From: Lytechinus pictus
Lineage: Eukaryota
Direction of reading: 5' to 3'
Assembly (NCBI RefSeq): GCF_037042905.1
Contig: NC_087257.1
Span: 23,064,001-23,128,000 of the forward strand
DNA length: 64,000 nucleotides
This document shows positions 27,801-54,800 of this stretch, piece by piece. How positions within the stretch are numbered: the stretch's first letter is position 1; each line of letters starts with the position of its first letter. The position numbers and the translations under genes were made by a program. The notes beneath the pieces were generated by a model. That model was given only the letters and a program-made list of their open reading frames with translations, had not been told where the DNA came from and did no database searches.

Positions 27801-30800
27801 TACAGTCTTGGACTTGGAGATCTAAAGTAATTTGGCAATCATCATTAAATGAAACGATTACCAACACAGTCAATACCATCCCTTACCCCTCTGAAACTTC
27901 TTCTCCACTACAAACTAAATGCAAGTATGTTATCCTGGAATCTATACCTTCTTTTCCTTTCACCGTCCGACTAATAGAGTGGACAATTCGACTGATTGAA
28001 TCGTGTACGTGATGCATTTATCGAACAGATGTTAATCCGGTTAGAACATGTGGAAAACGTTGATCAAATTTCTCCAAAAGTAAAATACAACATCGCATCA
28101 ATCGGCAATTGCAAGATGTTTTTCTCAGGTTAAGTATTTACTTTATCGGAAACTCAGGAAACCACATGGAAGTGCACACGGTAGATTACGTTAGGTTGTG
28201 AAAGGACTGATTGAGGTGTTAAAGAAGTTCTTGATAACTATGATCATGGCGGTATATTAGAACATGGACCTATAGGAGGTAAAAGGCGGTAAACCCTGCC
28301 CCCTCATATACCTTAAAGAGCACCTTGCATATCGATATTCGATATCGATAATAAAATCATGCATTCTGCTCTCGAAATAATACCAGCGAGTTTACCTTAA
28401 CGACAATAACTTATCTTGTTCATTATACAAGGTTTTCTTATATTTCATACTGATGACTATGATGATTACTCTTGAAATGATGAGAATAACTACGAGCATT
28501 TCAAATAGCTTAAAGTAAAATGAAGCGCATTATTTCCCCTTTCCATCTCCCTCCATTTTTCATCCCTTCTCTTTTGTTCCTCTCTTTCGTCCCCCCCCCT
28601 CGACGTCCCCCCTTTCTCTCCTCCTTCTCACCCCCCTCTCTCTATCCGTGCCATCCCCTCATCCTCTCTTGATCTCCCTCTACAGCTCCTCTATCCCCCC
28701 CCCTCTCTCTCTCTCTCTCTTCTGATACTGACCATGGCCTTATGGCACTAGATTTCAGTGACCTCAATGTTATACGACCATTATAAAACCCTCTCGGGCA
28801 TGAGAAGATAACTCGACCCGGATTCCTCATTCACCTTGATATGAGACCAGGAGGCCTGTTTCATAAAAGATTTGCAACTGTTGTAACTTTGCCATAATGG
28901 CAACTACCATGGTAACAGGGCTCAGCAGCCAATTAGAATCAAGGTTTCCATAGTAGTTGCCATAATAATGGCAAAGTTACAACAGTTGCAATTTCTTTAT
29001 GAAACGGGCCCCACGATAGGACCGTTGCGCAAAGAGCTTTGCGATTAAACGTAACAAAAACAAAATCAATCGCAAAAACGTGCGTTTCATTGGAAATTAA
29101 AAAGCGGTTATTTTTTGGAGGTGCCTTTGATTATACAACTCATTCTGAAACGGGGCTCAAGAAGGGGGAGGGGTGAAAAGTCCGATTGAGTATTCTTGAC
29201 ATGGAGAAAAAACATTACTCTTAATGTTATTGAGGTTAGAAGGCATGGAATCATCTAAATAAAAGGATCGACACAAACAGAAAAATGAGAAGCAAGGTAT
29301 GGGGGGGGGGGGGTGAGGTGGGAATGTGAGAACCGGGTGAGAACATGCAAACGAAGGTGTGAACTGGTCAAACTGGTCACTTGATTAGAAGAAAAAAATG
29401 AATGGAAGAATAAAGAAAAGCTGAGAATAATTTGTACTGTTTTAGGGCAATAAAGTTCTTGACAGGGACAATCGGAATTTGTAGTTTTAAATCATGCAAT
29501 TTCTTGAAGGACACATATAGACGGCCTTTCATTCAATTTCAAAATATTGTTGCTCTACGGCGGCCGTACGGGGAGTCGAAAACAGCCGTTTTATTAATTT
29601 TTATTCAAACCATCTTTGAAGCTGGTACAAATTTTTTTTAAACGGCTGTTTTCGACTAGCCGTACGGCCGCCGTAGAGCAAATGTGACCAAGGTATAACA
29701 GCTCCCTTATACGTTGAATCGTTCTTCAAGTACGATTATTTTCTCATACAACACTCAAAACATTCTCAGTTTCCTTCCAGACTATTTTCCTTATCCGCTT
29801 CGTTAAATTGAACTTCCCATGGCATTAATGTGATCAAGACATTTTAACAGAGTCCCTTGATACTAATGTAAACTCATGTTTTCAACATTTTGTTTTGGGA
29901 TACTATTTCACTGGGATAGCAATCGTTTAGTCCAGGACTGCTGCACTTTTATAACGGATATATATTTAATTAATTTCCGCAGAGGATAAACACTGATCAA
30001 GACACAAGTTATTAAGATTACTGTGTTCAGATGTTCAGGAAATTCATTTCCAGGGGGGAGGGAGTCATCATTTTCAAAGATTTATATGTTTCCCTTGGAA
30101 AAGTAATTGAGAAAAGTCACACGATCGTGCTATCAAAATTAATTCACAATATCATCACAATCGTAATCCACATCGGGTTCTCAGATAAAGTAATGCTCGT
30201 TTTCTCAAATCGGAATTAATTCAAACTCCTGTTTGAAGTTGTGGTTTAACTTGAGCTACGGCTTTTCTGTGAAACAAATTAAAGTACAGGTTCAATTCAT
30301 CAGCTCAAATCCACACTCAAACCATGGACTAGTAGGTCCATGCTCAAACCAAGAAAAAATATGTAAAATTATTGTGTTCACCATTAAAATATGAAGAAGA
30401 GTATGTTAAACAATAATTACGAAACATACAATGTAAATTTTTGAATAAAATTTTCAACTGCAGAATACGAGTACACTCCAAAGGGTTTATGAAACCCAAA
30501 ATATAATACCACATAGTATCATTGATTAAATTTCACTGATCAAAATAAAATAAAAATGAGGCAAAACGGTTTCCTATTTCTCATGATATGCCAAGTCAAA
30601 GTTATCAATATTTAGATATTTGAAAGACCCGTGGAGGTCGCCATCTTGCTCAAACTCCCCATATCTTCGTGGGGGGTTGTGACGTCAGCAACGTACAACT
30701 CGGTGTCTGATCTAGCGCGCGCTTGTGATATATTGCTAGTGGTGGATAACACATGGGACTAAGCTGATCAGGATGGTTTACTGCCAGGCGTTTGGCTGCC

Positions 30801-33800
30801 GAAATCGGTCAGGAAAGGGCGCAAAATGCAGCTTTTACCGCATTCCCGATCCGGAGAAGAGGCCAGAAATCTCTAAAAAATGGGTGGCTGCACTAAAGGT
30901 AGAGAAATACAACAAGCCTTCCTACAAAATCACGAGAATTGATGTTGTTTGTAGCGAGCACTTTACCGAGGACTGCTTTGAGAAGAACGTGATAGAGTTG
31001 CCTGGGAAAGCTACCCCAAAACGACTGAAATTGGATGCTGTCCCTTCAATTTTCCTCCATCATGCCCCCCAGCCGAAAGTCCGGGAAAGTACGGAGAAGA
31101 GATTGGCAAGGATAGAAGCTCAAAAAGTAAGTATAATGATTTTTTTCCTGTTTTGTCGCTTGTATGTATCTTTGCACTGCACTGAGGTGGCACGACGATC
31201 GTCTCAAGCAACGTCAGTCAGTCGCGTCGGTATACAATACTCGGCCTCGGCAGGTCTACCGCGCTACCATGGCCGTGCCATGGGGAGGGTGAGGGAAAGC
31301 CTCGGCATCCTCGCCGACATATTGCTGCAGCTGCACAGTGCACATGCACCCGTCCCGAGCTGAGGCTGTGCCCTGCGGGGACAAGTTGCTCACTACATCG
31401 TATCCCCGATTATTTAGTCAAGAAGTAAGACTTACATGTAAAACGGTGTTGAGAAACAGGCCTCAGTCAGTCAGTCATGCCTAGTTAGGGACAGGGTAGG
31501 CTGGCGCTTTGTAACTTAGAATCTTAGGCTTGGCTTTGTATCTTGGTCTCGTTTTGTATCTTAAATTTAAAAGCTCCAAAACAGTGGAGGGATCATTCTA
31601 AGTCTAAGTAAGAGAGAGAGAGAGCTGCCTACCGGCAGAATTAGACAAGACTCTATTCTAAAAAAGTAAATGTGAATAATTTTGACTGTTTTTGTTAATT
31701 TTCATACCGGTACCAATGCAATGGCAAGATACTGGTACAGATTTTGAAGAAATTTGCGAGGCCAGCGTAGCCTTTATAACATTTATACTATAGGCCTACA
31801 TCATACACAATTACATGTACATGTATAGTACTCGCACTAATGCAAGGTTAGTTGCACTAATGCCAACGGGCCTAGATTTATATTAGTGAAAACTAAGAAC
31901 TGAAGTTGTTTTTGTTGTATTATTTTAATAATATTATCTCCTCCATGTCCATGTTAATAAATAAGTGTGATATCTTAGCATGGTTTTATTTTTGCAGTAG
32001 TAAGGTCCTCCTAATTTTAGATTGCATTTACATGTAATTCCTGATGTTATTGGATTTCATATTAAATCAGTACAGGCATTTTAAGCATACTGTCTTGTTG
32101 AAGAATTACATTACAAATTCTTTACAGTATTCAGGTACATGTAATTTGTTTTGCTTTTTTTTTTCTATGTTGTAATTTTATATTTTTTGAGAGAGAGGGG
32201 GAGGCCACAAACTGTAAATGGGATTTTGATTACCCGGTACACACACACAAAACCCCTGGCCGTAATGTTTATGTTCACTGTACTTAATGCGAGAGCTAAT
32301 GTGTTCGGGTCTTTTAATGGTCCGCCCCGCAGTCCACGTCTGCCCCGTTTCAATTTTTTGATAACTTGTAATTCAACAATCCTTTAACAGATCAACTAAC
32401 TTCAAACTAGCCTTGAGGACTCCATGTCTGATATTTCTTAATATTTTGACATAAACTTCTTCAGACATAGAGCTTTGAACCACCGGCCATGAGACACATG
32501 TACAAAGATGGATTTCCCTAGGAAATCCATAGTTAGAGGGTTAAATCGGTTCGTAGGGGTGAATTTTATTTATGAACCTTCATGCGCCTAATGCGTATAA
32601 AGGAATAAAAAAAATTCACTATATATAAAAATAAGACGTTTCTTTATAACAGACCGATCGCCTGGAGATCCCTCAATCCATTTGTCAACAAAGCAAATAC
32701 AATACAGCGTGACCCTTGAACCGCTTCGTTATGAGGTACATCCGATTAGCGATGCTGTTTTGAAGAACAATTTATAGATAAAAATTATTATTTCACAAAT
32801 ACTAACATTTAATACATGATTATAAATAATTAGTATACAGTAATAATACTAATTTTTTATAATCACGTATTAAAAATAATAATTTGTATCTATAAATTGT
32901 CCTTCAAAAAGGCATCGGGGGGAGGTAGGCCATCAAGTTTTCTGATGTATGATACCTTACAAATTGATAACATACGATAGGGTAACTTGGATATATCATA
33001 ATACCAATAATCTATAATTTTATGTTTCAGTATATCCAAACAGTCTTGTCAGCACCAACCAGTGGAAATGATGAACAAACTTTTCCGAGTAACATCCAAT
33101 CTACACGTACATGCACCTCTGCTTTTGCATCTCCTGCACCGGTAAGAATATTACACATTTCATTGGAAAAAAATATGGGGAGTTATATGTACCTTTTGCC
33201 CCTATCTTTTAACTTCCATGTATAATGCCCATGAGTCTTGAAGTTGCCCCACATAATGGTGGTTTCGTTGCACTTTTTTTCAATGTTCATGGGGTTTTAG
33301 AATATGTCAGTTGAACATAGAGATCTTGTCATAAAATTGGTATCATTTTAAAGCTAGAAATAAAATGTATACCCTGTCATTTTTGAAAAACTAGCGCAAT
33401 AGCACATAAATTCATGACACTGTGATTGATAGAGCAAGACATGGCGAGATTGGTTAAGGGGGTGGGGTACATGCGAGTCTGTGAAAGTCACATTTCATAT
33501 TTTAAACATAACTGGTATACCGGGGGCTAGAGGCTTTATTTTGGTTTCATTTTAAAGCTTGAAGTGGGTAGTATATACATCTAACACTCTTCACAATTCA
33601 TTTCAATTATTGAATAATTTTAATTAGCAATGAATTTAAAAAAGAATTCTACAGAATTTTTTTCTCAAAAATTCTTGATTGTTTGTGCTAAATGGAGATG
33701 TATGAAATTGGTAAAATAAAACAAGGGTCGTTAGAGGTGGTGGAAGCTGTGCAAATTACATGCATGATGTTAGTCACTACATGATGTATTTCATTGTTTT

Positions 33801-36800
33801 TTCTCGTGTGAAATGAGGTTTGTTTACCCATGTACATGTAAAAGTACATGTAGATATAGGAAAAATACATTTTGCTTTAATATATTTATTATAATGCACC
33901 CAAGGATTGTGGAATCACTAAATTGTCAGAGAAATTACATGTACATGTACATTGTAATAAGTGAGTCATATGCACTGCACACAGAAACGTATGTCCAATT
34001 TATGGGACTGCAGACAAATGTTTATTTAGCTGATATATGTCATATTTTGATTTTGTCAGGACATCTGAAGATAAATCATTTGCAGTCCTGCTTTGCCGTA
34101 ATATTCTCCCTATGTAAACTTAAGTTGTTACGTTTATTTTTTTAAAATACATTTAACGCTATATATGTTATTTAAACTGGTGGGGTTCAGATAAAAACCT
34201 TCCCCCAAAATTGCTGAAATGTCGCATTTAATATCGTTAATCCAGGATACAGCCAGTAATTTTCCTATTTTCCCTGACTTTAGTTTTGTGTAGTTGGAAA
34301 CAATCTACAAAATGAAAAATATTCCCTTCTTTCTCAACTCTGAAAGAGATGAACTACATGTACATGTACACGTACCATGTGTTGCTCATTTTCTGGACTT
34401 GAAAAATAAAAATCCTATCAATATCACCTTCAAGATAGATTGGTAGTGCATTATGGGTAAAGGAAAACTTGATATTGGAGTGGTGCTTTTTTTCAAGTGG
34501 AGAAAATGAGCCCAAATGCATAAATGGATTCAATGTTAATGATTCAAGGACTTACATTTGGCTTATTCTTTGGACAGCTCCAAGGTAAATGAGTGACATT
34601 CAGAAACAAATTTTAGCTTATACATGTACAAACAATTATTTGCAAAGAAATGTTACCTGACATTAGTTGCTGAAACCCACTTTTCAAAATAATAACATTT
34701 GTTATTTTGATCCCCTGATTTAATGAGATATGAATATTCATGAACATGGTTACATTGTGATGTAAAATTGACATTGCATATTTGAAGAGAAAACATATTG
34801 GTCAAATTCTTTGAACTTTAAATGGCTATCACAATTTTGAGTTATTGATTGGATTATATGTTGTTCTAGCTTTAATATGCTGCATTACATCAACAAATTT
34901 GTGGACGGTATTTTTCATGTAAAACATAAACGCATACCCAGTTACGGAGTGACATCCGAAATATTCACACAAAGGCAACGTGAAATAAACTTATACTTTA
35001 AAATTTTTCTCTTGATATGATGTAAAATGATGATCTTCAGATTATCCAAAGGAACATTTTAGCAAACAAGCAATAGTTTTCTCGTAAATAGAAATTCATG
35101 TACAAAACAATACATGTAGTCCCATGTGTAGAATTGTTTGTATGGATTAGATTTTCTTATAAGGAGATGCATAAGAAAAAATGACTTTGATTAGAAAAAA
35201 ATTGATCCATATTTGAAATAGAGCCAATTAAATTTCTTGGGAAATGTCCACTTTTGCTTGGAATTGCCCCTTTGGAATAAAATGTAAGTGTAGGACTTAA
35301 GGTCTATTAAATAAGAATCTTATAGTTTGTACAGCCCAATTTTTTTGTGGTCCCACATGTAGACTTCCATGTTTATCTTGAGTGACCTCATCTCAAAGTA
35401 CAGAGTCAAGAAAGAAGGGAATGATAGAATGAACTATGATAATCATTTTTTGGATGTAAAAGTGTGAAATTTCATCAACTTTTGTGGGGAGCTCTTTTTG
35501 TTTCAAGGGGAAGTTAACCATGACAGAAAATTTATTGTAAAAATAGCAGAAATGTGATAAAAAATATTGCTGAAAGTGTGAGACAAATCCATCAAAGGAT
35601 AAAAAAGTTATTAAATTTTATTTGTTTGAATTGTGACGTCATGTGCAAACAGGATTCTTACCTCGCAAATGGTAAATAATCAATGAAATGTCATTTTCTC
35701 AGAATATTGAAAATGATTTTTACTGCACAATTTGTGTATCAATAGACATATCACTTCACACTGATCATGAAAGGAAACGAACATAAATCTTCAAGAGCCA
35801 GTAAAAAAATTAAATAAATGCATTTTATATTACGTAACACATAGGGCAGCTTCTTGTTTATGTCAGAAACCAAAAACTTCAATTAACGAAATCTTTGAAT
35901 AGATTTTCCTCAAACCTTCAATATTTTTTATTATTCTGCTATATGTAGAACTAACTTGTCTTCAGGGTGAACTTGCCCTTTAACTTCTGTTAAAACGGTT
36001 GTCACAATAGATGAAAGTTCATGCCTGTAATGGTTGTTTGAACAGCATTTAAAGGTCAAGTCCATCCCAGAAAATGACGATTTGAATAGAGAATAATCAA
36101 ACAAACATGATGCTGAAAATTTCATCAAAATTGGATGTGAAATAAGAAAGTTATGACATTTTTAAGTTTCGCTTATTTTTCACAACACAGTGATACATGT
36201 AAGCACAACTTACAACAACAGTGACATGCAAATGAGAGTCGATGATGCTCCTCACTATTTCGTTTGTTTTTTTATTGTTTGAATTATACAATATTTCATT
36301 TTTTAAAGATTTGACAATAAGGACCAACTTCATTGAACCATAAAGTATTAAACAATGTTAATTGCACGTGTTCAGGGATGAATTAATTGTTGTTTCACAC
36401 GACAACAGGGATGCATAAGTACATGAAGATGCTTTTTTTTCCATGTGTGATTCCAGTGAAATACAATGATTTTATTGACATTCTTTATTCTCTTTGTTGT
36501 TCTATACAGTCAACCAATTCTCATCCAACTAATGACGAGCTTCGAGAGTCTGCTGAAAAACTGCACATTCCTTCATCCCTATCAAAGGTTTGTCTTTAAA
36601 AAAAAACAATAAGCAGTGTATGTACACTAAATTCCTAGTTCAATGGAAATTTCAGTTATTTGAGAATTGTAATGAGAAAGGTAAAAATTGTGTCATGATA
36701 TCATGTTACAGTTGTCTGTATTATATTTCTTTGTTGTTGTAGCATATAAAAGATGGGTTTTTTTTGCATTGCACCATTACTATTATTAGGAGCTTTATCA

Positions 36801-39800
36801 CTTTCACAGTTCATTGTTTATTCATATTTTTGCCACATTCAATTCCTAGTTCAATGGAAATTTCAGTTATTTGAGATATGTGATGAGAAAGGTAAAAAAA
36901 TGTGTCATGATATCATGTTACAGTTGTCTGTATCATGTATCATATTTCTTTGTTGTTGTAGCATATACAAAATTGTTTTTTTTTGCATTGCACCATTACT
37001 ATTATTAGTAGCCTATCACTTTCACAGTTCATTGTTTATTCATATTTTTTTCCACATTTTAAATACTACAGCCAACACAATCTTATCCAGCCCGTAGCAA
37101 GCGTGAACTTACTAGCGATGAAGAACTCACTCCTTCATTCCCTATAAAGGTAAAACTTCTTATCAGTGTACACGCTCTTGAATTAATATAAAGTGGACTA
37201 ATTCAAAGAAGGGGGGAGGGGGTCTTCTGAGGTGAGGTTAGAACATTGAATACTTTATTACCAAATTATTATTGTCGTAAGGGAGAATCGGTTGGGTACC
37301 AGAAAGATGCTCCTGTACTAAAGCTTATCTGTTATTAACCAGCTTCATATTAGAAATGTGACACTTTGCAGTGTAGCTTGTCAAAATCAATTTTATAATT
37401 GAATGATCTAACATGTACTTTATTGTAATCCTTACAGGACCACCTTTCGCTACAATCTCGGCCTCGTAAGAAGCGCAGACGAGGATCTAAAAAGAAGATG
37501 TGCTCCGATAAGGTAATATTCCCTTAATTTTAATTATGTTGACTAATAAAATGTTTGATGGAATCACAAGGGAAAATAAACTAATTTTCTTCAGTAATTT
37601 CCATGTGGAATCATATTTCAAATTGGAATTCTTACATGAATGTGTCTTAATTGGATTCATTTTCAAAAGTTACATTCTGGGGTAATATTTTCATACAATT
37701 TGTTTTCAGAGAGCATAGAATTTAGTTATTATAGTAAGACATTCTCTGTCCAAAAGAGCACTTGGATTTCATCAATGTGCTGAAGTACACTTGGATAGTG
37801 ATTAACCACACATTTAATGAACATCCTTGGTTTTCTGTCAAAAGAGCTGAGCAAATTGTGAGTTTGTTGGGAATGCAACATCATGATTTGAATATTTATA
37901 TCAAATTTAATTATCTATGAAGACATGATTGAAATAAATTGAATAAAGAGAATTTCTGGCATTCATTATACTTGTACGTGTGCACAAGTTTCCTCCCGCA
38001 TTAAAATGATCTGAATGGTGGAACTGTGGGCAATTTTTCTAAAATTTTACCTCTAAATTTTGTTGATTCAATAAAAGAATATATCTATCTTAGTAATTGC
38101 TATATGTTTTTGTTACTTTATTTTTGTATGATAACATCAATAATTATAATTGTTAGTATAATATTAGTGATAGAAGTATTAGCATTGCTGCTGCTACTAT
38201 TACTAATATTGGCAGCTATTTTTAATAACTTTTAATTATCAACATCATTGTAAATAGTACGTTCAGAGTTTGTGCTATTGTTATCTTGATTATTAGTTTA
38301 CAAGTTTAGGGAACTAATCTATGATTCCATTTTCTTTTCAGGAAAGAACCTTCCAATCTTCAGACTCAAGCACACAGACATGCCTTGAAGACATTGATGA
38401 CAATGGACTGAGGGAGGAGAGCACACAGTGGCCTCCAGACTTTGATGCTATCAACATTGACCATAATTACCCACAAACACAGTTGCCAGTTGTGTGGCCA
38501 TGTTGTGCAAAAAGTAAACTCAACAGCAAGACTCAAGGGTCATCACCTTTGACCGAGCCATCGATGGCTATGCCTCCACCTCCACCACCAAGCCAATCAC
38601 CATCTGGCTCCCCACCCACTGCACCTGGACCACCATTACCCAGCATGACCGTAACTACCTCTCAAGAATCGGTATCAATATCACCTAGACCTTCACCAGA
38701 ATCAGAATTGCACGTTCAGCCCAGTGAAATATTGACACCTCTTTTGTCTCCCAAGAATTCTTCGATGTCAGATGAATCATCTTCTGATGAACTAACATCG
38801 TCGCAAGATAGTTCTTCTAGTTCAACTTCCCTTTACAACACCGGCACATCAAGTGACCCTTCTTACCTACCTTCTGATGAGGAATCCTCCAGCTCAGAAC
38901 CAGAAGATGAGCCACCACAGCTTCGCTATGTGAAGGAAAAGAAGTTTCTAGTGTTTGAGGAATGTCTTGACACTTTGTTATATTCACAGAAGTGTGCTAA
39001 GTGTGGTTCTGGACAGATATGCGAGATAAAGAAGTACTGTGTGGGCACAATGCTTGTAGCAGACCTCACATGCTTTTGTGGAAACGTGTTCAAATGGTCT
39101 TCACAACCGAAGATTGGGAAACAACCAGTTGGCAACCTTCTGACAGCGTCTGCAATACTTCTCAGTGGCAAGACTTATGAACAGTTGCGATTCTTTGCGG
39201 AACTTCTCAACCTCCAATTCCTATCCCACACCACCTTCAACTCCATCCAAAATGCAGCCCTCCTCCCCACCATAAATCACTTTTACGAAGAAAACATCTC
39301 TTCTGTAAAAAGGGAAGTAAAGTGTAGAAATGACCAGGTAGTCTTGTGCGGAGATGGGAGGTGTGACAGTCCCGGATACAACGCCAAATACTGTACATAT
39401 ACATTTATCGACATGAAGTCCAACAAAATCCTGGACATGTCCGTTGTCCAGGTGACTGAGGCATCAAGCTCTGTTGCCATGGAGAAGATCGGTTGTCAGC
39501 GGACATTAGAGAAGATATTACAGGACGGCATCAACGTTGCGACAGTAGCAACCGACAGGCATACGGGAATCCGTAAGATGCTCAGGGAACTTTACCCGTA
39601 CATCATCCACCAATTTGATGTCTGGCATCTCACCAAATCCATAGGAAAGCGGCTAATAACAAAGTCCAAGCAGAAAGAATGTAGTGAGCTTTGTCAGTGG
39701 ACCCAGGCCATAAACAATCATATCTGGTGGGCTGCTCAACATTGTAGAGGAGATCCGGATTTGATCATTGAAATGATCCAGTCGATCACCCATCACATAT

Positions 39801-42800
39801 GTAATATACATCAATGGAATTCTTGTGACCAGTATCATAACTGCGCACATAGAGAATTCACCGAAGAGGAGATCGAGGCAAGAAAATGGTTTGTTCCAGG
39901 ATCCAAGGCGCACACAGCTCTCCAGGAAGTCTTATTCGACACCAGGTTGGTCAAGGACATGAGACACCTAACCCAGGCTTGCCATACAGGGTCCATAGAG
40001 GCTTACCACAACCTGTATCTCAAATATGCTCCCAAGCGTCTCCACTTCAAGTATCCAGCAATGCTTGGGCGTGCCCAGCTTGCTGTTCTGGATCACAACC
40101 ACAACGTGGAAACCAAACAAGCCACTGTCAAGTGCCCAAGGAGAGGTACAGCACCAAAGGGTAGCCCGAGATATCGGTATGTGTTCTCCAAACACACTAA
40201 GGAGTGGATCCGGAAGAAGGTCCCAGAAGACAAGGACTACACTTACCTCTGGGAAGTTATGGTTGCAGTGCTTGAGGTGAAAATGGGCGAATTTCTACCA
40301 GAAGATCCCATCATTCCACATCTTCCAGAGAACATTGCGCCAGTACCTCGTCCTCCTCGTGCTGAAATTGACTCTCGTGCAACGACTAGGTTCACCTCTT
40401 AGGAAGAAGTTAACTACAGGTTGGATGAGAGGTCACCATGTAACTTCTGGTGATTGACCCCCAGCCAGTACCTCGTCCTCCTCGTGCTGAAATTGACTCT
40501 CGTGCAACGACTAGGTTCACCTCTTAGGAAGAAGTTAACTACAGGTTGGATGAGAGGTCACCATGTAACTTCTGGTGATTGACCCCCAGCCAGTACCTTG
40601 TTCTCCTCGTGCTGAAATTGACTCTCGTGCAACGACTAGGTTCACCTCTTAGGAAGATGTTAGCTACAGGTTGGATGAGAGGTCACCATGTAACTTCTGG
40701 TGATTGACCCCCAGCCAGTACCTTGTTCTCCTCGTGCTGAAATTGACTCTCGTGCAACGACTAGCTTCACCTCTTAGGAAGTTGTTAGCTTCAGGTTGGA
40801 TGAGAGGTCACCATGTAACTTCTGGTGATTGACCCCCAGCCAGTACCTTGTTCTCCTCGTGCTGAAATTGACTCTCGTGCAACGACTAGCTTCACCTCTT
40901 AGGAAGATGTTAGCTTCAGGTTGGATGAGAGGTCACCATGTAACTTCTGGTGATTGACCCCCAGCCAGTACCTTGTTCTCCTCGTGCTGAAATTGACTCT
41001 CGTGCAACGACTAGCTTCACCTCTTAGGAAGATGTTAGCTTCAGGTTGGATGAGAGGTCACCATGTAACTTCTGGTGATTGACCCCCAGCCAGTACCTTG
41101 TTCTCCTCGTGCTGAAATTGACTCTCGTGCAACGACTAGCTTCACCTCTTAGGAAGATGTTAATTAGCTTCAGGTTGGATGAGAGGTCACCATGTAACTT
41201 CTGGTGATTGACCCCCAACCACAAACATGGTCTCTTCAATGTCATTTATATGAATACTACAGTTATTGAAATTTATATGTGGACCATTTATGTTTCACTT
41301 GCAGAAAGATACTGATGAGGTACAGATTTATAATACTTGATTTTATCACATTACTTCCAGAATTGACTCTAAAAAGTATATGATTTCTATTCATTGATGT
41401 CATGTATATGAATTCAAGACGAGAACAAGCGTTACTTTACCTTGCAGAAAGGTGACGCGCTTCATATTGGATGAGAGGTCACTACGGTTACATAACTTAT
41501 GGTGAGGGACTCCTTACGAACACATGCAGTATTTTCTCTTTAAATGTTAAGCATAAAAGTTCACGAAGGAGATGCATCCAACGTAGTTGCTGGATAGTTA
41601 CCTATGCAAATTCATTTACGTAAATGGGCCTCATGTGTAAAAATTTCACTGATGTAGCCAACAGGTTGTTGTAAGTGTCAACAAGTCATACATTGTGGGA
41701 TTGAAGATCCAATACATTATTAGACATGAAAGTCATATGTGTTATGGACAAAGTATTTGAGATATTTTTGAGACAGGAAATATACATTATTGTATTTTCA
41801 GTTATTTTGTGTTCCCATTCACTCCTGGTGTTGATCTACTGTATCAGGAAGTAAATTTTTGATGTTCAGATGCCAGAATCACAGAAATAACACTGCCGAA
41901 AGATTTTATTGATGCAGTTTATACTCTGATAATTGTAGGTTGTTAATTGAATTAGTGATGTAATTTATATTCATATTTTATTAGTTTCTATGTAAAAAGG
42001 ACCTCAAAATCCCAAAGTCTTACAACTGGCTATGAATGGATACCAATTTTCAGACGAAAGTAGGAACACTCTCTTACAAAAGAAGGGCCCATTTTTTTGT
42101 AATTTGTCTTTATTTTGATCCTACATGCAAGTAGCATCCTACATGTTCTTTTACATCTGTGGGAGTTGGCAATGCAGTTATTGTATTCCATCTAATATGC
42201 GCAGGCACATTAGGGTACACTACTACAATTGTCAGAGTTCCCAGCCCATCAGGGATTTTATTTTTATTTTTTTCCATTTGGAAAAAATCAGGGAATTTGA
42301 TCAGACCCAAAAGTCGAAAGTACATGTACCTCAAATCAGGGAATATGCCTCAAACGAGGGAAAAATAGGAATTTTGATCAGCCCAAAAGTCGAAATCATG
42401 GTAGTCAGTCCGACTCTGTTATATATCAACATATCAACCTCTTGCTGTATAAGGTGAGAAAATGATGGCTGTATGGGGAGAAAGGAGGCCATAACATGCC
42501 TGTGTAATAGTACCAACTGAATCGTACATTATTGTTTTTATACAGAAATACATGTACATGTATTTCACGGCAACGACATAGAAAACATGCAAACCTGGGA
42601 ATGGGTATAATCAGGGAATTTGTTTTATCGAAAAGCTGTGAACCCTGATTGTAATGTTTGTGAGGTTGGACTCCCACATACATGTAGCTGTGCAGCATTT
42701 ACATGTAGTTACATATATCTCTTCATTGCATGTCAAAATGGTTTTTACCTAAGTTTACTTATGGAAAATAAAGTTTGTCACAAGTTACGTGTAATTTCAA

Positions 42801-45800
42801 CATGTGTTCAATCGATTACAGTGCACTTGAACTTGGTAGTGAAAAGTGTTACATGAATGTAAAGTTTGACAGAAAATAGTTTAGTGTGTTAAAAAAAAAA
42901 ATCAGTCACACCACACACTTGTGTGACTACATTTTGGTCTGAGACTGCCAAATCGAAGCGTTATCTTTCTGTGAATGATATTCTCAAAAAGTGCACCTTA
43001 GAGAATACACAACATGAGATTGGCAATTGTCACTCATGTGATTCTAACAGAATCTATTAGAATATAAACTGTTTTTAAATGTAGAATTTGATACTTTGTA
43101 TTATAATGATTCCTACGGAAATTGCTCAATAATTTGCAAAACAACTGTCTGTTTTTCTGTCAGGCCTTTCCCCATCTCTCTGTTATATTACAACACCTGG
43201 CCACACGTTCGTTTACAAACTTATTTCAGCTTGCTGTTACTCGGTTTTCACACATTTTCCTTATTGATTTGCAAATCTTTTTTCTTGAAATTGTTGCTCC
43301 ATCTGACTAGGCAACTTTGCCTCCGAGTAAGAACCGCCTGTTTAATTTGTACATACATTCAGAAGATTATTTTTTAATATATATAATGGTATTAGTATTT
43401 CTGTTGTCAGCCTCAAGGTACACAGAAGAGTGAACTCATATTACTCTTGGTTATGTATGTAATCTATGTTGACTAGAGATGATATGATGTGCCCTTTTTC
43501 CATGAGAGGACAAAATTTGTCATACTTATGTGTTTTTTATTGGAAATATTCTGTTTTTTATACATTTACTTTGTTTTGATGAAATTACATTTTTTGCTAT
43601 GGTAAAATTAGTTTGACAAGAAGTGATGAATAAATCTGTACTAAAATGTTCTTTTTAGTAGATATGTGAATTGTAAATTTTAGTTGGGACAGCTCCCCCA
43701 TTTAGTTATTGTGCCTGTAATGTTTAGTTTTACAGATTGTCACCAATGCCTTTCCTTATGGCCAGTGATTGAATGATAGAAGGCATCATGCCCAGTCCAA
43801 CTTGTGGGAAGTTGAACTTAGATCATGTGTACTTAAAAAATTCTTTGCTCCTAATTTTCCATGTAGTTGTATGCATAATTACTACAACTTTTTAGAATTT
43901 GTAACACTCTATAATGAACCTGTCAGGGTTTGCTTGAATTCTCATTTAACTGTTTCTCTGCATTTTCTTGTTTTATATGTAAATTACTGTTGAACATGTA
44001 AGGGAGTAACTAATTTTCTCAATGAATCATTTCCGGCTACTTCAACATTCCCAATCTCAAATTTTGTTTTAAAACATTGTGTTTCTCATGCAGTTTAGTT
44101 TTTCCCCCTTTACTGATGAGTGACTGCCACTTTTCCTTCTCCCTATAAAGAATGAATTGTATCTGGGAGGGGGGGGGGTAAATTTAGCTGGAACATGTAT
44201 TCTGTAAGATTAAAGGATGGTGATTGAGGAGTATGTGCATGTATATTCTGTCTTTTTGTGGTTTTGATGGGTTTCCCCCAGTTAATATAATTACTGCACT
44301 GTTTGTGAATTTTACAAAGTAAAAGTTTTTTTCATAGTATTGCTATGTGTTCTGCCTTGTTTGTCCTTTTTTCTGGTGATGGTTTACATTCATTATCACA
44401 TTTTAGTGAGGAATAGTGCATAGAAATATAACCTGAAGCATGTTAAAAAGCAATGAAAATTATAACAGTAATAAAAAAATTATAGACATTAATGATTAAT
44501 TATTGCTGCTAATAGTTATGTTGACAAAAAAATTCAAGCACCAAACTTTTTGATCAGTACTCAAGGAGAGAGGGCCAAAAATAGCTGAAGATGTAAAAGG
44601 GAGAAGAGCAGAGTGAGCGAGAGAAGGTGAGAGTGAGGGAGAGAGATGTAAACTGGCGAAGTTGAGCTCATCTTGTTATGGTAATATGGAAATGTGTACA
44701 AGTTGAAATAAAAGGTCAATTCCACCCAACATCAAGTTTATTCATTCTATTTGGAACAAAGGGGCTACATGAAGAAGGTCCTGAAAGTCTTGCAAAATAC
44801 ATGTACACAAGAAAGATATTTCCAAATTATGATGACATTGTACATGTACAGCAGTTTTGGAGAGCAGTTATAAAATGACATAGTCATAAAAAAATTGGCA
44901 TCAAGAGACTGCGAAAAAGGTTCTCAATGTCACACCCTTAATGTATATGTTTTAATTACCTTCAATTTTATATATATTTATATGCGACTTGTATATGTTG
45001 GGATCAACTTGATGTTGGGGTGGATTTACTTTCGAACTGCACCATTGGAAAAAAAAAATGCTTACAAGGGCTTACCCTGTGACCTGCTTACTCAAATGTT
45101 CGTGTTATCAGTTTACACGTGTCCATGTATGTTGAAATACATATGAAGAGCTTGATTCCAAAAGGGGCTAAATGCACTTTTGACCAAAATTGGTCTTGGG
45201 TAAAAAATTTTACCCAAAGAGTGGGAAGGTTGGTAAAATTTTTTGGTAAAATGTTTTGTTCCAAAAAGAGCTAAATCCAAAACAGTTTTGTTCCATAAGG
45301 AGCTTAATCCTTTACCAGGTCAATTACTTTTCATATAGTCATGCATTTTAATTTTTAGGTACATGATGTGGATACAAGTGCACACCATCAGTGCATATTT
45401 TGTTGAAAATTACAGAATTTTACAATTCTCATATTTTTTTATTTAGCTGCTTTTGGAATAAAAGATCAAAAGGTAGCTGTCTGTAGAAAAGGTTTTTTTT
45501 CTTTTTAAAATTATAAATGGATAAACATCCAAAATGATGTAAAATGTACTCTGATTACGTGTTGCTTGTTAAATTTCCAATGTTGAAATGGACAAAAATG
45601 GGCATTCAACCATTCCAAAAGGAGCTAAATGCATGATTTTCTTTTATTATTAATAGATATTGAATGCTATATTTTTTCAAACATGATTTAATTCATTTGA
45701 GATGACAGCACTATCGTATATATAAATACTGTATATATATGAAGAGTTTAGTTGCAAAGGGGTTAGGTCCACTTTTTCCATTCCAAGAAAAACCATATTT

Positions 45801-48800
45801 TTTATTCTCACTGCAATACTCTGAGAAACTAAATTGTCATGATGTACTACTCTATCATGTGAACATAAAATTGGGTATAAAAAAATCTACCCATCTTCAA
45901 TTTTTTCTATATATTCTTTTAAAAATTATCATTGTGGACCTAACCCCTTTTGCAACTAAACTGAAATGAATCCAATCTATTTTGATTAAATAGGTGATTT
46001 TTCTTTGCCACTTTTATTCACGTTTTTATGTGAATTTCAAATTTTTGTTGTTTTCATCAGAACGACTAAAATTTAGAGGATTTGAGACAGAAAACAATAA
46101 AAATTTATGAACAATGGACCTAACCCTTTTTGACAAATGAGCTCTTTACAGCTCATTTGTCAAAAAGCTTTAGAGCTCATCAGTTTGCAAAAGGGGATAG
46201 GTCCACGCCAAGAAAATTATTTTTTTAATTCTCCCATATTGCAATATTCTTATGCGAAACTAAATTTTCATGATACCCTACCATGAGAAAATAAAATGGG
46301 GTATAAAGAAATCCACCTGTCTTGATATTTTTGTAAACTATTCTTTTCCAAAAAAATTCTGTGTGGTCCTAACCCCTTTTGCAACTAAACTGAAATGGAC
46401 CTAACCCCTTTTGAAAAAAAAGTGATTTTTCGTTGCCATTTTATATCACTTTTTAATGGGAATTTCAACTTTTCTTTGGTATCATCTTATAGAGCTACTA
46501 AAAATCTATACATTGAGAAAAAAAAATCAAATTTGATGAAAAATGGACCTAATCCCTTTTGCAAGTGAGCTCTTCATATATCAAAATAAAATAGCAGTGG
46601 ATCAGGGAAAATGGTGAATTAAAAATCCTTGATTTACAGAATAGCTCCAAAAGTGGATTTAGCTCCTAATGGAATAAAATTCTTCATATCCATGTACACA
46701 AGACTACGTCCTCTTTCTCACACAGGTATGATTGTTACCCAACAGTCTACATAATGCACATCAATATGTTTTGAGTCAAATATGTTTTGAGTCAAGTATT
46801 TTTCAAATTTTATTAACATAAAATGACACACATATATGATAGAAATTGTAACTTTTTTCTACAATAATGATTTTAATATACATGTAAAACAAATTAAAAT
46901 GGCATTTATTTACATGTACAGAAACAACTGAAAATAAATTGGTGATTGATAATCCTAGCCCCATGAGTATGGAACAGTTCACAAGCACTTTACAAAAAAG
47001 GAAAATAAGCAGTTATCTCTGTTTTAGTGACTGTTACTAAATGTCCGATATATTCTAAAAGTGTGTTGTGCACCTTTTCATTCAAAGACTAATGATACAG
47101 TACTTAGTGTGTGCTGCATTTTCTAAACGATACTACAAAATTAAAAAAGAAATTTGATCTTCATTTTTTACCATAAGCATTGTAATAACAGGTTGCCATT
47201 ACAGCAAATCCATTTCAAAACACACATGCATGCATAATGTAGGTCGCATGTATGATGTACATTCTAACTCGAGTGTGTCAATTTAAATTAAAATTGCTTT
47301 ACAAAGTAATACAAGTTAGTGTACCAACATCTATTACAAAATGCAACATTTCATTCCTATTTTAATATATTCCAACTGTACATGTATTTGTCATAACAAT
47401 GGCAGTGCAACCATATATATTTTTTCTGCATAATCATATCTCATCTGAGAAATATGTCGAAAATAAATGTAATTACTTCAAAGAAAAAAAGGAAGGGACA
47501 GAGTGCCTGAACTGCATGTCATTTTATCTGCAAAATAGAATGACTGAGGCAAGGCTGACCACCCACCCACCCATTTCCCTAAAGATGCATTAAAATTTGG
47601 AGAAAAAAAATTATTAACATAAACATATATGAGGGGTGAGCAAGATTTGCAACAAATATGACCAGTCACCACTGAATACTGGTTTAAATGTATATGTATA
47701 TCAAGGTTTTGACAAAGGTGAACAGCCATGCAACATTTAAAACCTCCCAACTGGAGCAATTGACCTTGCATTCAACAACAACAACAAAAAGCTTTATAAA
47801 CATAATTTTTCTCACTAAAATGTGTATGCCAGGAGCCAATGTGAAACAAATAATTTTCACAATGTCTTTTTTTATATGGTTCCAGACAGTCATGTGTAAA
47901 TTGACAATTTTTTCTCTCGTAGAAACAAGACAATGCTATTCTGCACTCAAGTTATGGTAGTTTTCTTGACCTTTAAAAAAATAAAAACTTACATGTACAT
48001 GCAGCCTTCAACAATATAATGTATCCGTTGTTAAAAGTACAACATGTAGACAAATCCAGAGAGAACACCTTACAGGTACATGTAGAGTCAATAATCTTTC
48101 ATAATGCAATGTACATGTACAACCTTTTAATTTTTTTATAAACATTGAACTGCATGCAATGAATGACCTACTCCCATTGTGTTGCCAAAACCTTCTTTGT
48201 CAAATTTGTCATATAAAAACGTAATGCATAAAACAAACATAAGTAAATCTTACATGTACTGCAATACAGAAAACAAATTAAAATGAAAGATTATAAGAAA
48301 GCTAACGTGGGCATCCTCCAGCTTATAATTTGGAAATTCAAACTGTAAATTTGCCCTTCTGTCAAGTTCTGTGTACCGTAAGTTCTTACATGCAAGTACC
48401 AGGTAATTTCTTTCACACAATATGTTTTCATATTACAGAATTTAATGTTCTGTGTATTACGAATCAGACAATGGATTCAAACTTTAAAAACATGTACATG
48501 TATTCTTAAATTACAAAAACTAGACACATGCTCAAACATTATGGTACAGTAGTACATGATGTGAATTCTGCATGTACAATGTATGAACCGCCATTGTCTC
48601 TAAAGCTCTAGATATTCCTGTCTGACCCTAAAATTTTAGAATGAATGCAAGAGTTATATGTACATGTAATTTCATTTTTAATCCTGGAAAGGTGTAAAAT
48701 CACTATTTTGATGTAATTCATTATACAGTATACAAAAATATATATGAAAACTTCAATTACATGTAGACACATTTACAATAAAATGAATAGGCATTTGATA

Positions 48801-51800
48801 CAGCAAAGTAGGAAAATAATGTATGGACATACATTATGGGACATTATACTGTACATGTGTACTGCATACTGAATCTTTTCAACATGCACTCATTATCAGA
48901 GTGAAATCTCATGAGCTAAAAGAATGTTGCTACAAAATGTTTTCAGACTTATATAGCATTTGTTTTGTTCTACATACTAGCATTATGTTCAATGATGTGA
49001 TTTTATTCTTCAAAAAGCTTTAGTTTGTCAGTTTTTAATGCTATTTTCTGAATTACAAAGTGGGAAGAAAAAAATCACTTTCAAAGCTCCCATTTGATTC
49101 CCAACTTCATCCCATGACAGCTTATCACAAAATTGTCTTAATGTACACATATTAACTGAGAGCAAAAGAAGGCAGGAGTTTCATTTGGGATATAAGAAGG
49201 GTCATATAACTGTATGCTGTAGGCTAGCAAAAAGGTTCATATTGCAAAATGTTCTGGTACCATCTGCTGCTCACCATCATCGCCAATACTAAATCCTGTA
49301 TAAACACCGTCCGCTGCTGGGTAGATGGAATGAATTTTCAAGACGGCGCAAGATGGTATCACCTTCCTCACACCCCTTCCCAGAAGACCATGAATCCAAT
49401 AGGTGAAGAGACGATATGCAGAGTATCTGTAGGATCTGGTGGGGAAAGATGTCCAAAATAGAAAAAATTATTAACAAATTGTAGTATTTAAACATTTGTA
49501 AAAATAAAAAAAAATTTCTAAAGTGCATTGATTTTCTACAGCACATGATCTTAAGAGACTTCATCTTGGTGAGTCAGCCCTTGTAATATTTCTTTCATGT
49601 TGGTCATGCGTGTAATGTGATTTTGATTGTTTGATTACGCCTACGGTATTCAATTTTGACCTGGTGTGACTACAGGTGGACTGGACAAATCCCCATCCGG
49701 GCTAGCCAGGCGGCTTCTAGAGAGTAAAAATCATTTATTTCCGACATTTCTGCGCCATCGGGCAAGTCTCTTCTCTCTTGTCATATTTTTCTCATTTTTT
49801 TGATGAATTCTTGTTTAAAAATAAAATCGATGGCGCAGAAAGGTCGGAAATGAAGTTGCATCCCATGTATACCCAGTTGATGTGTGTCCGGACGATCAAT
49901 TTTAGAAAGTCATTTGGAAAAATTTACAAGGCCAAGGGAAGTTTTATCAATTTTTAGTACAAAATGTCAGGAAATATTATAGAGAACAAGAAGATGATTA
50001 CAACTATTGAATTCATATTTTTAGTGTAATCCAAAGACAAAAAAGAAGGCTTCAAAAATATAAAGTGTCCGGACACCCGACCCCCCATCCTACATGATTT
50101 AGGGCTAACGTTAACATTAGATCTTTTAGAAGTAGAAATCTCGGGGGAGAAAGTTTCAGGTTTTGGCGGCCTACATGCACGTGAATGGATAGGAATACCT
50201 GGCTTCATTGGGAGTAATCTTACGTCAGTAAATGATTTTTACTCTCTAACACTAACAGTTAGAGGCCGCCTGGCTAATCCAGACGTCCCCCAATTTCTAC
50301 TGTACTGTACATGTATATGAAAGTCACAAATGATTGAATTGATTGTTGCAATGATTTCTCTGTAGGCCTGTGCACCAAACTATTTGGATTTTGGACATAA
50401 ATGTCAATAAGAATTTTATGCTATCTTACTCATTTTCAAGGATCCTTGGCAAATTGCCTCGGTGACCTCGCTTGTCCAGGCGGGCAACAAGCGCAGTTCT
50501 CAGCACCGCACGCTCCAGGCAAACTTTTGAAAAATCTTCATTATCTATAATACAGTTCACAGACGGAGACAAAAATTGGCGGCAGTTTCCTATCTCGTGG
50601 CAACATATGCACTCTATTTGCGTTGGCATCACTCTACAATTTCCACAACTGCACCAGTTATCGTTGTCCAGTCTATCTGGTGGTGGTGGCGGTGGCTCAA
50701 CATCGGCTCCGTTATTGTCTCTCTCGCTGCTGCAACCCGTGCGCCGACGTTCCTCTGCTCGTTGAGCAATTTCTTCGGCCGAGTATTGCGGCTCGAAGTC
50801 GTAGGGTCTCGGGCCTTCCATTTCACTCAGTACAAACCGTCCGCGATTGCCGCGATAAGTTTAGTTTTATTTAAAATCAAAGGTAACAAATAATGAAAAT
50901 GTTAGATAAACAGAAATAAAGCACGATAGTCAATCAGTCAAAACTTCCAACACGATAACTCGGTTCAGCCTTCCGTACGCGGTGTTTGCAGCTAGCTAGC
51001 TAGCTAGCTAGCGGTAAGCTTTGTCAAATTGGCCAATTTGAATATCGTAAATAAATGTGTAAAAAAAACTCATCAAAGCTCATCAATTTGTGTTTTTATA
51101 CCATAAAATAATTAAAATACCTTATTTATAATATTTTTAAGAGTATTAGATCTATATTTTATTTATTTTTGGTAGAAAGGTATCTATATTATGCAAACAT
51201 CGTGGCGGTTTCAACCCGTATAGCTATGCACATTGAAAGTGCTACCGAGACAGTTGTACGTCGATGACGTCACGAATTTGAACGAACCCCGAAACAATGG
51301 CGACCTCCATTCAGAGACTTCGAACCTGAAAAAGCCCAACTTTGAAGAGGTGGTACTCGATACTGGGAAATCGGATTTGGGTATAACTGGAATCATTTTG
51401 ATTGTCATGTTCTTATCAATGATACTATGTGGTATTATATTTTGGGTTTACGTCACCTTTAGGTATATAGACTTGCCCTTCTAAAAATGGTTACACTTCG
51501 TAATTCCGAAGGTTCTTTATTCCGAAGGTTCGTAATTCCGAAACACGTAAATTGCCTATACCTCGATGTTCGTTAATCCGAAAACGTAAAAGGATTCGTT
51601 AATCCGAACATTTGTGGCGTTATTCCGAAGGTTCGCTATTCCGAAGGTTCGATAATCCGAAAACGAAATAAGGTTCGATGTTCCGAAGGTTCGTTAATCC
51701 GAAAACGAAATAAGGTTCGTTGTTCCGAAGGTTCGTTAGTCCGAAAACGAAATAAGGTTAGTTAATCATTTAGTTTTCGGACTAACGAACCTTCGGAATT

Positions 51801-54800
51801 ACGAACCTTCGGAAATACGAACCTTCGGAACAACGAACCTTCGGAACAACGAACCTTCGGAATAACGAAGCTTCGGAATTACGAATGTATGCGGTTTTGC
51901 CCTTCTAAAAATACCATGGCACCGCCCCTGACACAGATGTACAACTTCCTTTTACGATTTCTCAGGGATAAACAGAAAGGGTTAGTCACTTTCATTAATG
52001 GTCAGATACTAATGACTAATTAAAGCAGATCACAGATGTATAGGCCTACGAATGCCAAGACGATGCACTTTTTATTAGATATCACTCGGAAGATATTATA
52101 TACAAGATGTGAGATACTGTTTAGGTATTAATCATAGCGTTTCACGTTATAGGCCTACATCGAATAAGTTTATTTCGGAAATACAACTAAGGCATAGGTT
52201 TCGATAATTATGCAAAAAATAATATCTCGGATAAAGGTGTCAACGAATAGCGAAACATCCAGGCAAATGTAATAACTTAAAAAAGAGATAAGCCTATATA
52301 ATGCAAGTTTTCTCAAATTCACGAATTTCACCGTCCTTTCAGAACTCACTTACGACTGTACGACCAAAAGGGTGAGTGTGGGAGGGGCTGTGCCCCTATC
52401 GATTTTCGTGGTCGACACTTATTATTTCATGTATTCTTATTTTTTACATATATTTTTTGAATGTATTATGGGTCCGGCATAGCCAATTTTTTTATTATTA
52501 AAATTACTAAAATTTTAGTGTCAACTTCTCGCAATATAAAGACAATCATTTTTAAAAAGATCCTTTTTTTAATACAGAAATTATAGTCGTATAGAAAAAA
52601 AAAAGAGGTGGGAAGTGGGATAGGTTTTTTTTACGTGACTAAATGGAAACTGGCATTCTTATTCACTGGAGACAGTGGCGTACCGTGGGTCACGGCATTG
52701 GGGGGGCACCAGCAAAAATTTTGAGTCACTTAAAGAGCGCGCGAAGTGCGCTCAGTTGCCAGGTATACTGACATAATAGAGACATTTTTAGGATAGTGTC
52801 ATTAAACGGATATGTATCTCACTGATCACATCATGCGAGCGCGAAGCGCGAGCTGAATTTTTTTGAAATTCAGACCTAAAAAGGACATTATAACCAAATT
52901 CTTGTAATCATAATACATACCTGTCTCGCTAAACAAACCATGCGAGCGCGAAGCGCGAGCTGAAATTTTTGTATATATTGACCCCAAACAGGGACATTTT
53001 AAGGACTATATTTTAGGAATCCATTAAGAGTATACATATCTCACCATAGTCATCTATTGTGAGTGCCAATCTCTTGCTGATTTTGTTAGACTAATATACA
53101 TCTAAACACATGAAGCACTTTTTTAAATCATTGTAATCATGGTTAACATACGCATCTCACTAATCAAATATTGCGAGCGCGAAGCGCGAGCTGAAAATTT
53201 AGGAAATTCAGACCTGAAGAGGGACATTTTAAGGCTTGTTTGTAGGAATTCACGAAGATCATACGTATTTCACTAACAAAAATATGTGAGCGCGAAGCGC
53301 AAGCTGAAATTTTTGCATATCATTGACCCAAAACAGGGATATAAGGACTATTTTTTTAAGGAATCCATTAAGAGTACATATCTCACCATAGTCATCTAAT
53401 GCGAGTGCCAAACGCATGCTGATCTTGTTAGAATTACATGTAAATGACACATGAAGCACTTTTTGTAGTCATTATCATATACGCATCTCACTAACCAAAT
53501 GATGCGAGCGCGAAGCGCAAGCTAAAATTTTTTGATATTCAGATCAGAAAAAGGGACATTTTAACGACTGATTTTGGGAATTCATGAAGAACAGACATAT
53601 CTCACCAATCCACGAATGCGAACGTAAGCACGGACAGGAAATTGTTTATATTAAGACCTTAAAATGGGGCAATCACTTTAAGTAGTCATGAAATAGAAGC
53701 ATATGTCACTACATAAACAATAATAATTCGAAGTGCGAGGAAATATATTTGGTGTATATTGACTTGAAAACGGGAGGTTTTAGTACAACAGGATTATATA
53801 TCTTGTTAAACATACAATGCGAGCACCAGGAACAATGGAGACATAGTTCCTGCGCAAATTATGTTTCATAAAGTTATGATTTTTTTTTAAATGTAATATA
53901 ACATAACATAATTATAACATAATATAACATTATAATTAACAATAATTTCTTCTTTCCCCACTACGTTTCTTTCCCTTTCTTCCTCTTTTTCTCCTTTTCC
54001 CCGTTTTTTTTTGGGGGGCCAGCCGATTGGGGGGGGGGCACGTGCCCCCCCATGCCCCCCCGTAGTTACGCCACTGACTGGAGACAAGGGTCGTTTGCAC
54101 TTTTCTCCACATCCGAAGCTTTCATGTGGTGCAGAAAAAAGTTTGAGAATCGTCCACTTACCAATGGGTGTTAACTTCACAGTGTGAATCAAGAAACACA
54201 AGAACCTCTCCGCGTGCTTCCCTCGCCCCTCTGATTTTCGCCCTGGCCACCCCTTCCCTCTGAGTGGTACGGACCAATTTCACTTTGCCCCGTACCAATT
54301 TCGGAATGTTCTGTAGTTTTTTCTCCAGTTCATCTGAAAAAAATATATATATTATAGGGTGACTGCACTGCATGGGTCTGACAATTATATTGAAAGACAC
54401 AAAACTGTAAAATAATATAACATGAAATGGGAACGATAGGTTAGACAGACCCGGATCTCGGTTAAGGGGGCACTGGGGTAGGTGCCCCCCCTGCCCAAAA
54501 ATGACAAGGACCTCAGTTGGCACCCATTTTGATACGCTCGTTTTGACGATAGATAGATAGACAGAAAGAGAATAAGAAAACAGAACGAAGGGAGAAGAAA
54601 ATGGATAAAATATCTATAACAAAAGCTTGACTTTATAATACTCTTATAATTCATGACGTCACAGGCAAGTCGCACTGCCCTCCCCTGTCTAAGTAAACCT
54701 TAATTGGTGCCGCCCTCAAGAATGTAACAAAAGCTGGGATGCAGGTTTATGTGAAATTTATGTATGAACCTCGAATAGATTTTTCGAGGAAAAATGAAAT

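Follow-up and report, generated by a model that had tools for sequence, protein, structure and literature searches.

Among Kolobok DNA transposons, the elements of the Kol0 (Kolobok0) lineage carry, besides their transposase, a gene for a second protein, KolX (Kapitonov & Jurka; Kojima & Bao 2022, Mob DNA 13:24, PMC9587614). KolX resembles residues 476-595 of P2X7 and has the ballast fold and seven cysteines (PMC9587614). In the same paper the "free ballast domains" of Rump et al. (2020, PMC7016195) were identified as parts of Kolobok transposons, P2X7 was proposed to have arisen by the fusion of a P2X4-like gene with KolX, and domesticated KolX relatives, such as zebrafish nanor, were proposed. 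Rump et al. had treated the free domains as host genes with "ancestral synteny"; their linked synteny markers were probably the transposase, as was later noted (PMC9587614). Only the 2022 paper was found in a full-text search of the literature for a link between the ballast domain and transposons. Here we describe a Kol0-type element in a 64,000-nucleotide stretch of the genome of the echinoderm Lytechinus pictus (assembly GCF_037042905.1, contig NC_087257.1, positions 23,064,001 to 23,128,000), referred to below as the window. The gene at 49237-50821 is almost certainly the KolX gene of this element, and its product has the zinc-cluster ballast fold. Taking the evidence as a whole, we are confident that it is the accessory gene of a Kol0-lineage Kolobok inserted in an intron of a GALNT-like gene; its product would probably be needed in trans for propagation of the element.

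The KolX gene is located on the minus strand, consists of two exons, encodes 196 amino acids (aa) and ends with a TGA stop codon. The first exon codes for the N-terminal PYDFEP motif, a helix, a Pro/acidic linker and the cysteine clusters WCSCGNC, CICC and NC, and the second for RYSAYR, IPSC, KIH and GVYTGF. The splice joint 49435/50430 (GT..AG, minus strand) is exact in transcript contigs of two L. pictus runs. These contigs show no mismatch over 47815-49435 and 50430-50934, and their ends reach 50969 and 47584. The RNA depth is zero at 51050-51199, upstream of the KolX transcript, which indicates that the KolX RNA has its start within the element, as opposed to being read-through from the host gene on the same strand. 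No transmembrane (TM) segment is found in KolX (over 19 residues, Kyte-Doolittle hydropathy peaks at 0.93), and Pfam finds only PF20478, with no match to a P2X ectodomain. The sequence-only reading had described a 196-aa two-exon protein with these motifs and with neither TM segment nor ectodomain, and the transcript splice, Pfam and hydropathy confirm this description. An entry with exactly this sequence exists in NCBI nr: protein P0001, named "P2X purinoceptor 7-like [Lytechinus pictus]". An actual P2X7 receptor is ruled out, since the protein lacks the ectodomain and the two TM helices and has 196 aa only.

Judged by its profile match and modelled fold, KolX is a stand-alone P2X7-type ballast domain. 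It matches Pfam PF20478 (P2RX7_C) with 64.1 bits (cut-off 23.5, E 2.1e-17, profile positions 67-191), and each exon separately scores above the Pfam gathering score of this family. In a phmmer search against PDB sequences KolX matches P2X7 alone (rat residues 468-592, E 5e-9). Among 1.84 billion cluster representatives searched, 2312 stand for clusters related to KolX at E <= 1e-3; KolX and 92 relatives from these clusters form the family alignment A1 (93 sequences), to which the residue counts given below refer. The AlphaFold model of KolX obtained with A1 has a predicted local distance difference test score (pLDDT) of 88.2 and a predicted template modelling score of 0.77. Foldseek returned 14 P2X7 entries for this model from the PDB and nothing else below E = 3. 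VIA-align superposed residues 38-183 of the model on residues 392-595 of the P2X7 chain in these entries with Z 12.1-12.7 (about 128 residues, root-mean-square deviation about 3.1 A), the next best Z being 2.1. Membership in the P2RX7 C-terminal family and a structural match to the ballast, the checks suggested in the sequence-only reading, are both borne out. KolX is a soluble protein whose residues ~38-183 take the ballast fold, held by a seven-cysteine cluster that in P2X7 carries two zinc ions.

Compared with the P2X7 ballast (PDB 6u9v, 8tr5 and 9e3m; PF20478), KolX shares the fold (Z about 12.5 over 128 residues, 27-30% identity), the seven-cysteine zinc cluster and the residues at the positions R546, Y550, P570 and C572. 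Unlike P2X7, it is free-standing and has no P2X ectodomain, TM helices, Cys-anchor or ballast part 393-467; C573 and three to four of the five guanosine diphosphate (GDP) ligands are missing, and it has a conserved N-terminal motif and helix of its own. The stand-alone ZCD/nanor-like proteins (PANTHER PTHR36981; Rump et al. 2020, PMC7016195) belong to the same family, for which a sea-urchin member and the conserved cysteines have been reported.

By the published definition, a Kolobok has TTAA duplications and 5'-RR...YY-3' termini. The window element contains two inward-facing genes, the THAP-DDE transposase starting at the left end and KolX at the right end, which are arranged tail-to-tail. 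The termini are of the 5'-RR...YY-3' type with terminal inverted repeats (TIRs), and subterminal motifs are mirrored across about 220 bp. The element is located inside an intron of a GALNT-like gene, which shares its strand with KolX. A sister copy from L. variegatus (locus L004), similar to the window from about 30524 to 51461, lies in an intron of an ABC-transporter gene; because the introns belong to different host genes, the two copies are not orthologous. L004 has TTAA on both sides and the ends AAG.../...CCT, which identifies it as a Kolobok. Two 5.3-kb copies that are 99.9% identical to each other were found in the crinoid Antedon mediterranea (L005 and L006); at both loci they read AGGAATGCAG...CCT and are flanked by TTAA on each side. 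Thus the described Kol0 elements and the present one have in common a second open reading frame of about 200 aa beside a DDD/E transposase, the seven cysteines and the ballast fold, and the TTAA duplications and RR...YY ends are seen in the sister and related copies. Nothing differs in kind from the published Kol0, whereas the window family is unusually long (21 kb, with long introns and internal repeats) and has a His at the R578 position, and the window copy lacks a clean TTAA pair.

The association of KolX with the transposase was assessed for KolX relatives that are 36-91% identical to the window KolX, by fetching 10 kb on each side and searching for the transposase with tblastn. The sample comprised eight independent loci (within L001-L010) from L. 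pictus, L. variegatus (two), Apostichopus, Antedon, Amphiura, the sponge Sycon and a further ENA assembly; they were picked for long contigs among the closest ~100 representatives, which places distant or domesticated members such as nanor outside the sample. In all of L001-L010, and so in all eight independent loci, the transposase core is located downstream of KolX on the opposite strand, tail-to-tail, as expected from the adjacency of free-domain homologues and transposases that had been proposed earlier. The identities of KolX and transposase to the window proteins run in parallel (55/56, 54/56, 48/46, 40/34, 38/37, 38/39 and 36/34%), and from these sequence comparisons the two genes have evolved as one unit. 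It is hardly credible, then, that the gene is a domesticated "P2X7-like" or nanor-like host gene situated near a transposase by chance. In favour of this reading, it is entered as a host gene at NCBI, a spliced transcript with a long 3' untranslated region (UTR) is expressed, and domesticated relatives such as nanor have been proposed (PMC9587614). Against this, KolX lies within the TIR-bounded unit, the two-gene unit recurs at a different L. variegatus locus with its own TTAA duplications, and the linkage holds in 8/8 relatives.

The transposase gene consists of several exons. The main exon encodes a Ser/Pro-rich linker, a Cys-rich finger, a DDE core of the ribonuclease H (RNase-H) type, a His/Cys finger and the motif SIEAYH. 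The 915-aa protein P0156 from the L. variegatus locus L004 is 96% identical to the window transposase across the core. The residues D150, D213, D234 and E361 are invariant in 51 transposase homologues, as are the DxxH motif and the zinc finger. The AlphaFold model (pLDDT 93.5) shows the RNase-H transposase fold; its nearest folds are the IS256-type ISCth4 (Z 13.9) and Hermes (Z 12.2), and the P element is among the Foldseek matches (E 4e-4). At the level of motifs, to which the comparison is confined, the GDGRCDSPG block is identical in the Repbase Kolobok-1_BF (Data S5, PMC9587614), and the TD(H)RH and DVxH blocks match. No Pfam family was obtained for the 693-aa transposase open reading frame at E <= 0.01, and faint precomputed "Mutator" matches exist on its relatives only; the classification is consequently based on motifs, fold and target site duplications.

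The Drosophila P-element transposase (PDB 6p5a) likewise carries a THAP finger at its N terminus, and a helical domain is inserted in its RNase-H DDE core. It belongs, however, to a different superfamily with 8-bp duplications, carries a built-in domain that binds guanosine triphosphate (GTP) and has no KolX partner, and the window transposase aligns to ISCth4 and Hermes at least as well as to the P element. The 4-bp TTAA duplications of the relatives, as opposed to 8-bp ones, rule out the P-element superfamily for the window element.

The ballast zinc cluster consists of seven cysteines in three groups, WCxCxxC, CC...C and PSC (PMC7016195), also described as "two zinc ions surrounded by seven conserved C" (PMC9587614). 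The GDP-ligand and zinc-site residues of P2X7 were taken from these two papers. In KolX the cluster corresponds to C57, C59, C62, C73, C74, C90 and C160, each conserved in 91-93 of the 93 sequences, so that the seven cysteines, which had been picked out by eye, are indeed in place. The GDP ligands of rat P2X7 are R546, H547, R574, R578 and K583 (PMC7016195). The corresponding residues of KolX are R134, Y135, V162, H166 and A171, and only the first of the five ligands is kept. Across the family the R546 position is Arg in 92/93 sequences, the H547 position is variable, the R574 position is Val in 83/93, the R578 position is Arg in 88/93, and the K583 position is Ser, Glu or Asp. Hence only two of the five rat ligands, R546 and R578, are kept family-wide. 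The Y550 position (Y138 in KolX) is Tyr in 92/93 sequences, R154 is near-invariant, and so is the N-terminal P-Y-x-F-E-P motif (P11 in 83/93). The sequence-only reading was right in stating that KIH replaces the KIR of P2X7; the His is H166, at the R578 position. The sister copy L004 has H166 as well, which makes it a trait of the element family and not the decay of a single copy; its origin by CpG decay of the window copy was rejected on the same ground. The conserved set of cysteines, together with the mostly missing GDP ligands, means that zinc binding is well supported by sequence and GDP binding in the manner of P2X7 is not.

These residues bear directly on the proposal that KolX binds GDP or GTP in a P2X7-like pocket and couples Kolobok transposition to guanine-nucleotide levels, supplying in trans what the P-element transposase possesses in its own GTP-binding domain. 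The helices that form the pocket have high model confidence and match those of P2X7 in the superposition, the R546, R578 and Y550 positions are conserved as given above, and the transposase fold is related to those of the P-element and hAT transposases. According to Rump et al. (2020, PMC7016195), free domains retain only R546 and R578 and may bind GDP, and their model of a free domain from a sponge was compatible with this nucleotide. Family-wide, however, three of the five GDP ligands are absent, the family of the window element has His at the R578 position, and the nucleotide cavity of P2X7 also draws on a helix from the neighbouring subunit, a context that KolX lacks. A GTP requirement is known for P elements and not for Kolobok. 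We therefore consider this proposal improbable. Of the interpretation given in the sequence-only reading, the free ballast domain located on a DNA transposon beside its transposase is supported by the 8/8 linkage and by the fold, and the GTP coupling is so far not supported, because the element is a Kolobok and not a P element and KolX keeps one GDP ligand of five. The idea that such elements donated the tail of P2X7 is already in print (PMC9587614). As the identity of KolX and the ballast was published in 2022, the finding in the window is a correct rediscovery and adds no new concept. The unpublished part is only the analogy to GTP-dependent P-element transposition, an analogy that is weak given a Kolobok transposase and mostly absent GDP ligands.

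Comparison of the window with L004 gives ratios of nonsynonymous to synonymous substitutions (dN/dS) of 0.22 for KolX (0.20 for the ballast core), 0.13 for the main exon of the transposase and 0.20 for the THAP exon, all based on a single pairwise comparison, in which KolX differs by about 36 substitutions. The dS values are 0.17-0.19 for KolX and the transposase main exon and 0.05 for the short THAP exon; the 3' UTR of KolX, the sole non-coding stretch compared, is about 83% identical. Both genes are under purifying selection. The functional readings of KolX are drawn from linkage, co-divergence, selection and residue conservation. We propose that KolX would be required in trans for element propagation and that its most likely role would be that of a zinc-stabilised protein partnering either the transposase or the ends of the transposon. 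On the same sequence grounds we lean towards a positive action in transposition. A conserved basic and aromatic surface formed by R134, Y138, R139, R154 and position 166, which overlaps the nucleotide pocket of P2X7, would serve this function; a guanine nucleotide, a nucleic acid or a protein are candidate ligands. An anionic ligand of some kind in the P2X7-pocket region is possible.

Several points weigh against this account, among them the narrow basis of the dN/dS values. Purifying selection fits equally well with KolX being a transposon-encoded regulator or anti-host factor instead of a positive cofactor, that is, a repressor limiting copy number or a blocker of host silencing or of a DNA-repair step. 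Such a role would agree with the promoter region of its own that KolX has at the opposite end of the element, where it is expressed independently, and with the N-terminal P-Y-x-F-E-P motif and the acidic linker behind it, an arrangement known from docking peptides. A stable one-to-one linkage with co-divergence from sponge to echinoderms is more typical of an essential partner, however, and no homology to a known repressor or silencing suppressor was detected with Pfam or Foldseek; we regard this role as rather doubtful. The window element itself is flanked by CCAA (30478-30481) and TTAG (51459-51462) instead of by two matching copies of TTAA; its two ends are unlike each other in the outermost ~10 nt, although the next 35 nt are identical. 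These features suggest that the window copy may be old, rearranged or immobile, though both genes are open; the flanks and ends could have arisen by three transitions or by recombination of one copy with another. The transposase stretch corresponding to P0156 aa 211-229 was not found in the window by tblastn. Finally, no KolX exon reads were present in the ~6% sampled of two rRNA-depleted (ribosomal RNA-depleted) raw RNA runs (X19 and X20), so that expression is not universal and appears condition-dependent; the reads of these runs placed in the KolX intron belong to a dispersed repeat.

The features of the element and its surroundings are listed in Table 1. The 125-bp array overlaps the end of the transposase reading frame by ~20 codons, so that the C-terminal peptide and the stop codon recur further downstream.

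Table 1. Positions of the Kolobok element, its two genes and neighbouring features in the window
Feature	Position	Strand	Remarks
Whole Kolobok (Kol0-type) element	30482..51458	.	~20,977 bp; ends 5'-AGG...CCT-3'
Left TIR, perfect core	30492..30526	+	35 nt, 100% complementary to 51415-51449
Transposase exon 1, THAP zinc finger	30773..31126	+	Pfam THAP E 4.3e-15; 98% identical to P0156 aa 1-118
Transposase exon	33028..33141	+	P0156 aa 118-155; approximate limits (tblastn)
Transposase exon	36510..36587	+	P0156 aa 156-181; approximate limits (tblastn)
Transposase exon	37069..37158	+	P0156 aa 181-210; approximate limits (tblastn)
Transposase main exon	38333..40402	+	Open reading frame; 95% identical to P0156 (match to 40399)
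125-bp x7 tandem array	40339..41221	+	98% identity between units
KolX 3' UTR	47584..49236	-	Minimum length; contigs of runs X1 and X2 unbroken from coding exon to 47815 and 47584
KolX exon 2, coding part	49237..49435	-	199 nt; aa 131-196 and TGA; acceptor after pyrimidine tract
KolX intron	49436..50429	-	994 nt, GT..AG; 49435/50430 joint in transcript contigs
KolX exon 1	50430..50821	-	392 nt; aa 1-131, first two bases of codon 131; donor GTAAGA
KolX 5' UTR	50822..50969	-	Minimum length; transcript contigs
Right TIR, perfect core	51415..51449	-	Pairs with 30492-30526
Host-gene exon	54158..54523	-	Glycosyltransferase family 2 (GT2) / polypeptide GalNAc-transferase-like; Pfam Glycos_transf_2, E 2e-9

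A subterminal motif island, GGAGGTCGCCAT ... GTGACGTCA ... ACGTACAACT, is present at 30633-30710 and 51240-51305, upstream of both inward-facing genes, and could serve as a promoter element of the CRE type or as a site bound by the transposase. A sea-cucumber relative carries TGTGACGTCA in inverted orientation near both ends (L003 9576-9604 and 18663-18691). No clear ends were recognized in this locus, where the inverted-repeat search gave a weak 29-nt pair with TGACGTCA. Just beyond the right end of the window element, at 51497-51885, 16-bp and 42-bp tandem units (TTCGGAAxxACGAACC) form a large palindrome. The two-gene copies L005 and L006 have a single-exon KolX and look recently active. The intron of the window KolX contains at about 49700-50150 a dispersed, transcribed high-copy repeat, to which many RNA reads match partly and with loose ends; the element of L. 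variegatus has a further copy of this repeat in its transposase intron (L004 10579-10778). Ballast domains are also found as C-terminal tails of other proteins, namely P0019 (immunoglobulin V-set and C2-set), P0105 (major histocompatibility complex class I and C1-set) and the KRAB proteins P0076 and P0132. These tails are either cases of repeated exon capture, as in P2X7, or chimeric gene models.

The window contributes a well-documented, expressed echinoderm example of a KolX gene, a test of linkage (8/8) and co-divergence, the purifying selection on KolX and a residue-level argument against conserved P2X7-style GDP binding in the free domain. The database label "P2X purinoceptor 7-like" is misleading for proteins of the KolX type. 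What the ballast of P2X7 and the GDP bound to it do is an open question in purinergic signalling, and the transposon ancestor offers a small, soluble and experimentally easy version of this domain. It is conceivable, if unlikely, that KolX binds a phosphate-bearing ligand, either a guanine nucleotide or the backbone of the transposon end, in the pocket homologous to the GDP site of P2X7 and thereby gates Kolobok transposition. A rearranged basic cluster of R134, R139, R154, K/R155 and R/H166, together with Y138, would hold this ligand. If this were true, the nucleotide site of P2X7 would be the relic of a transposon control device.

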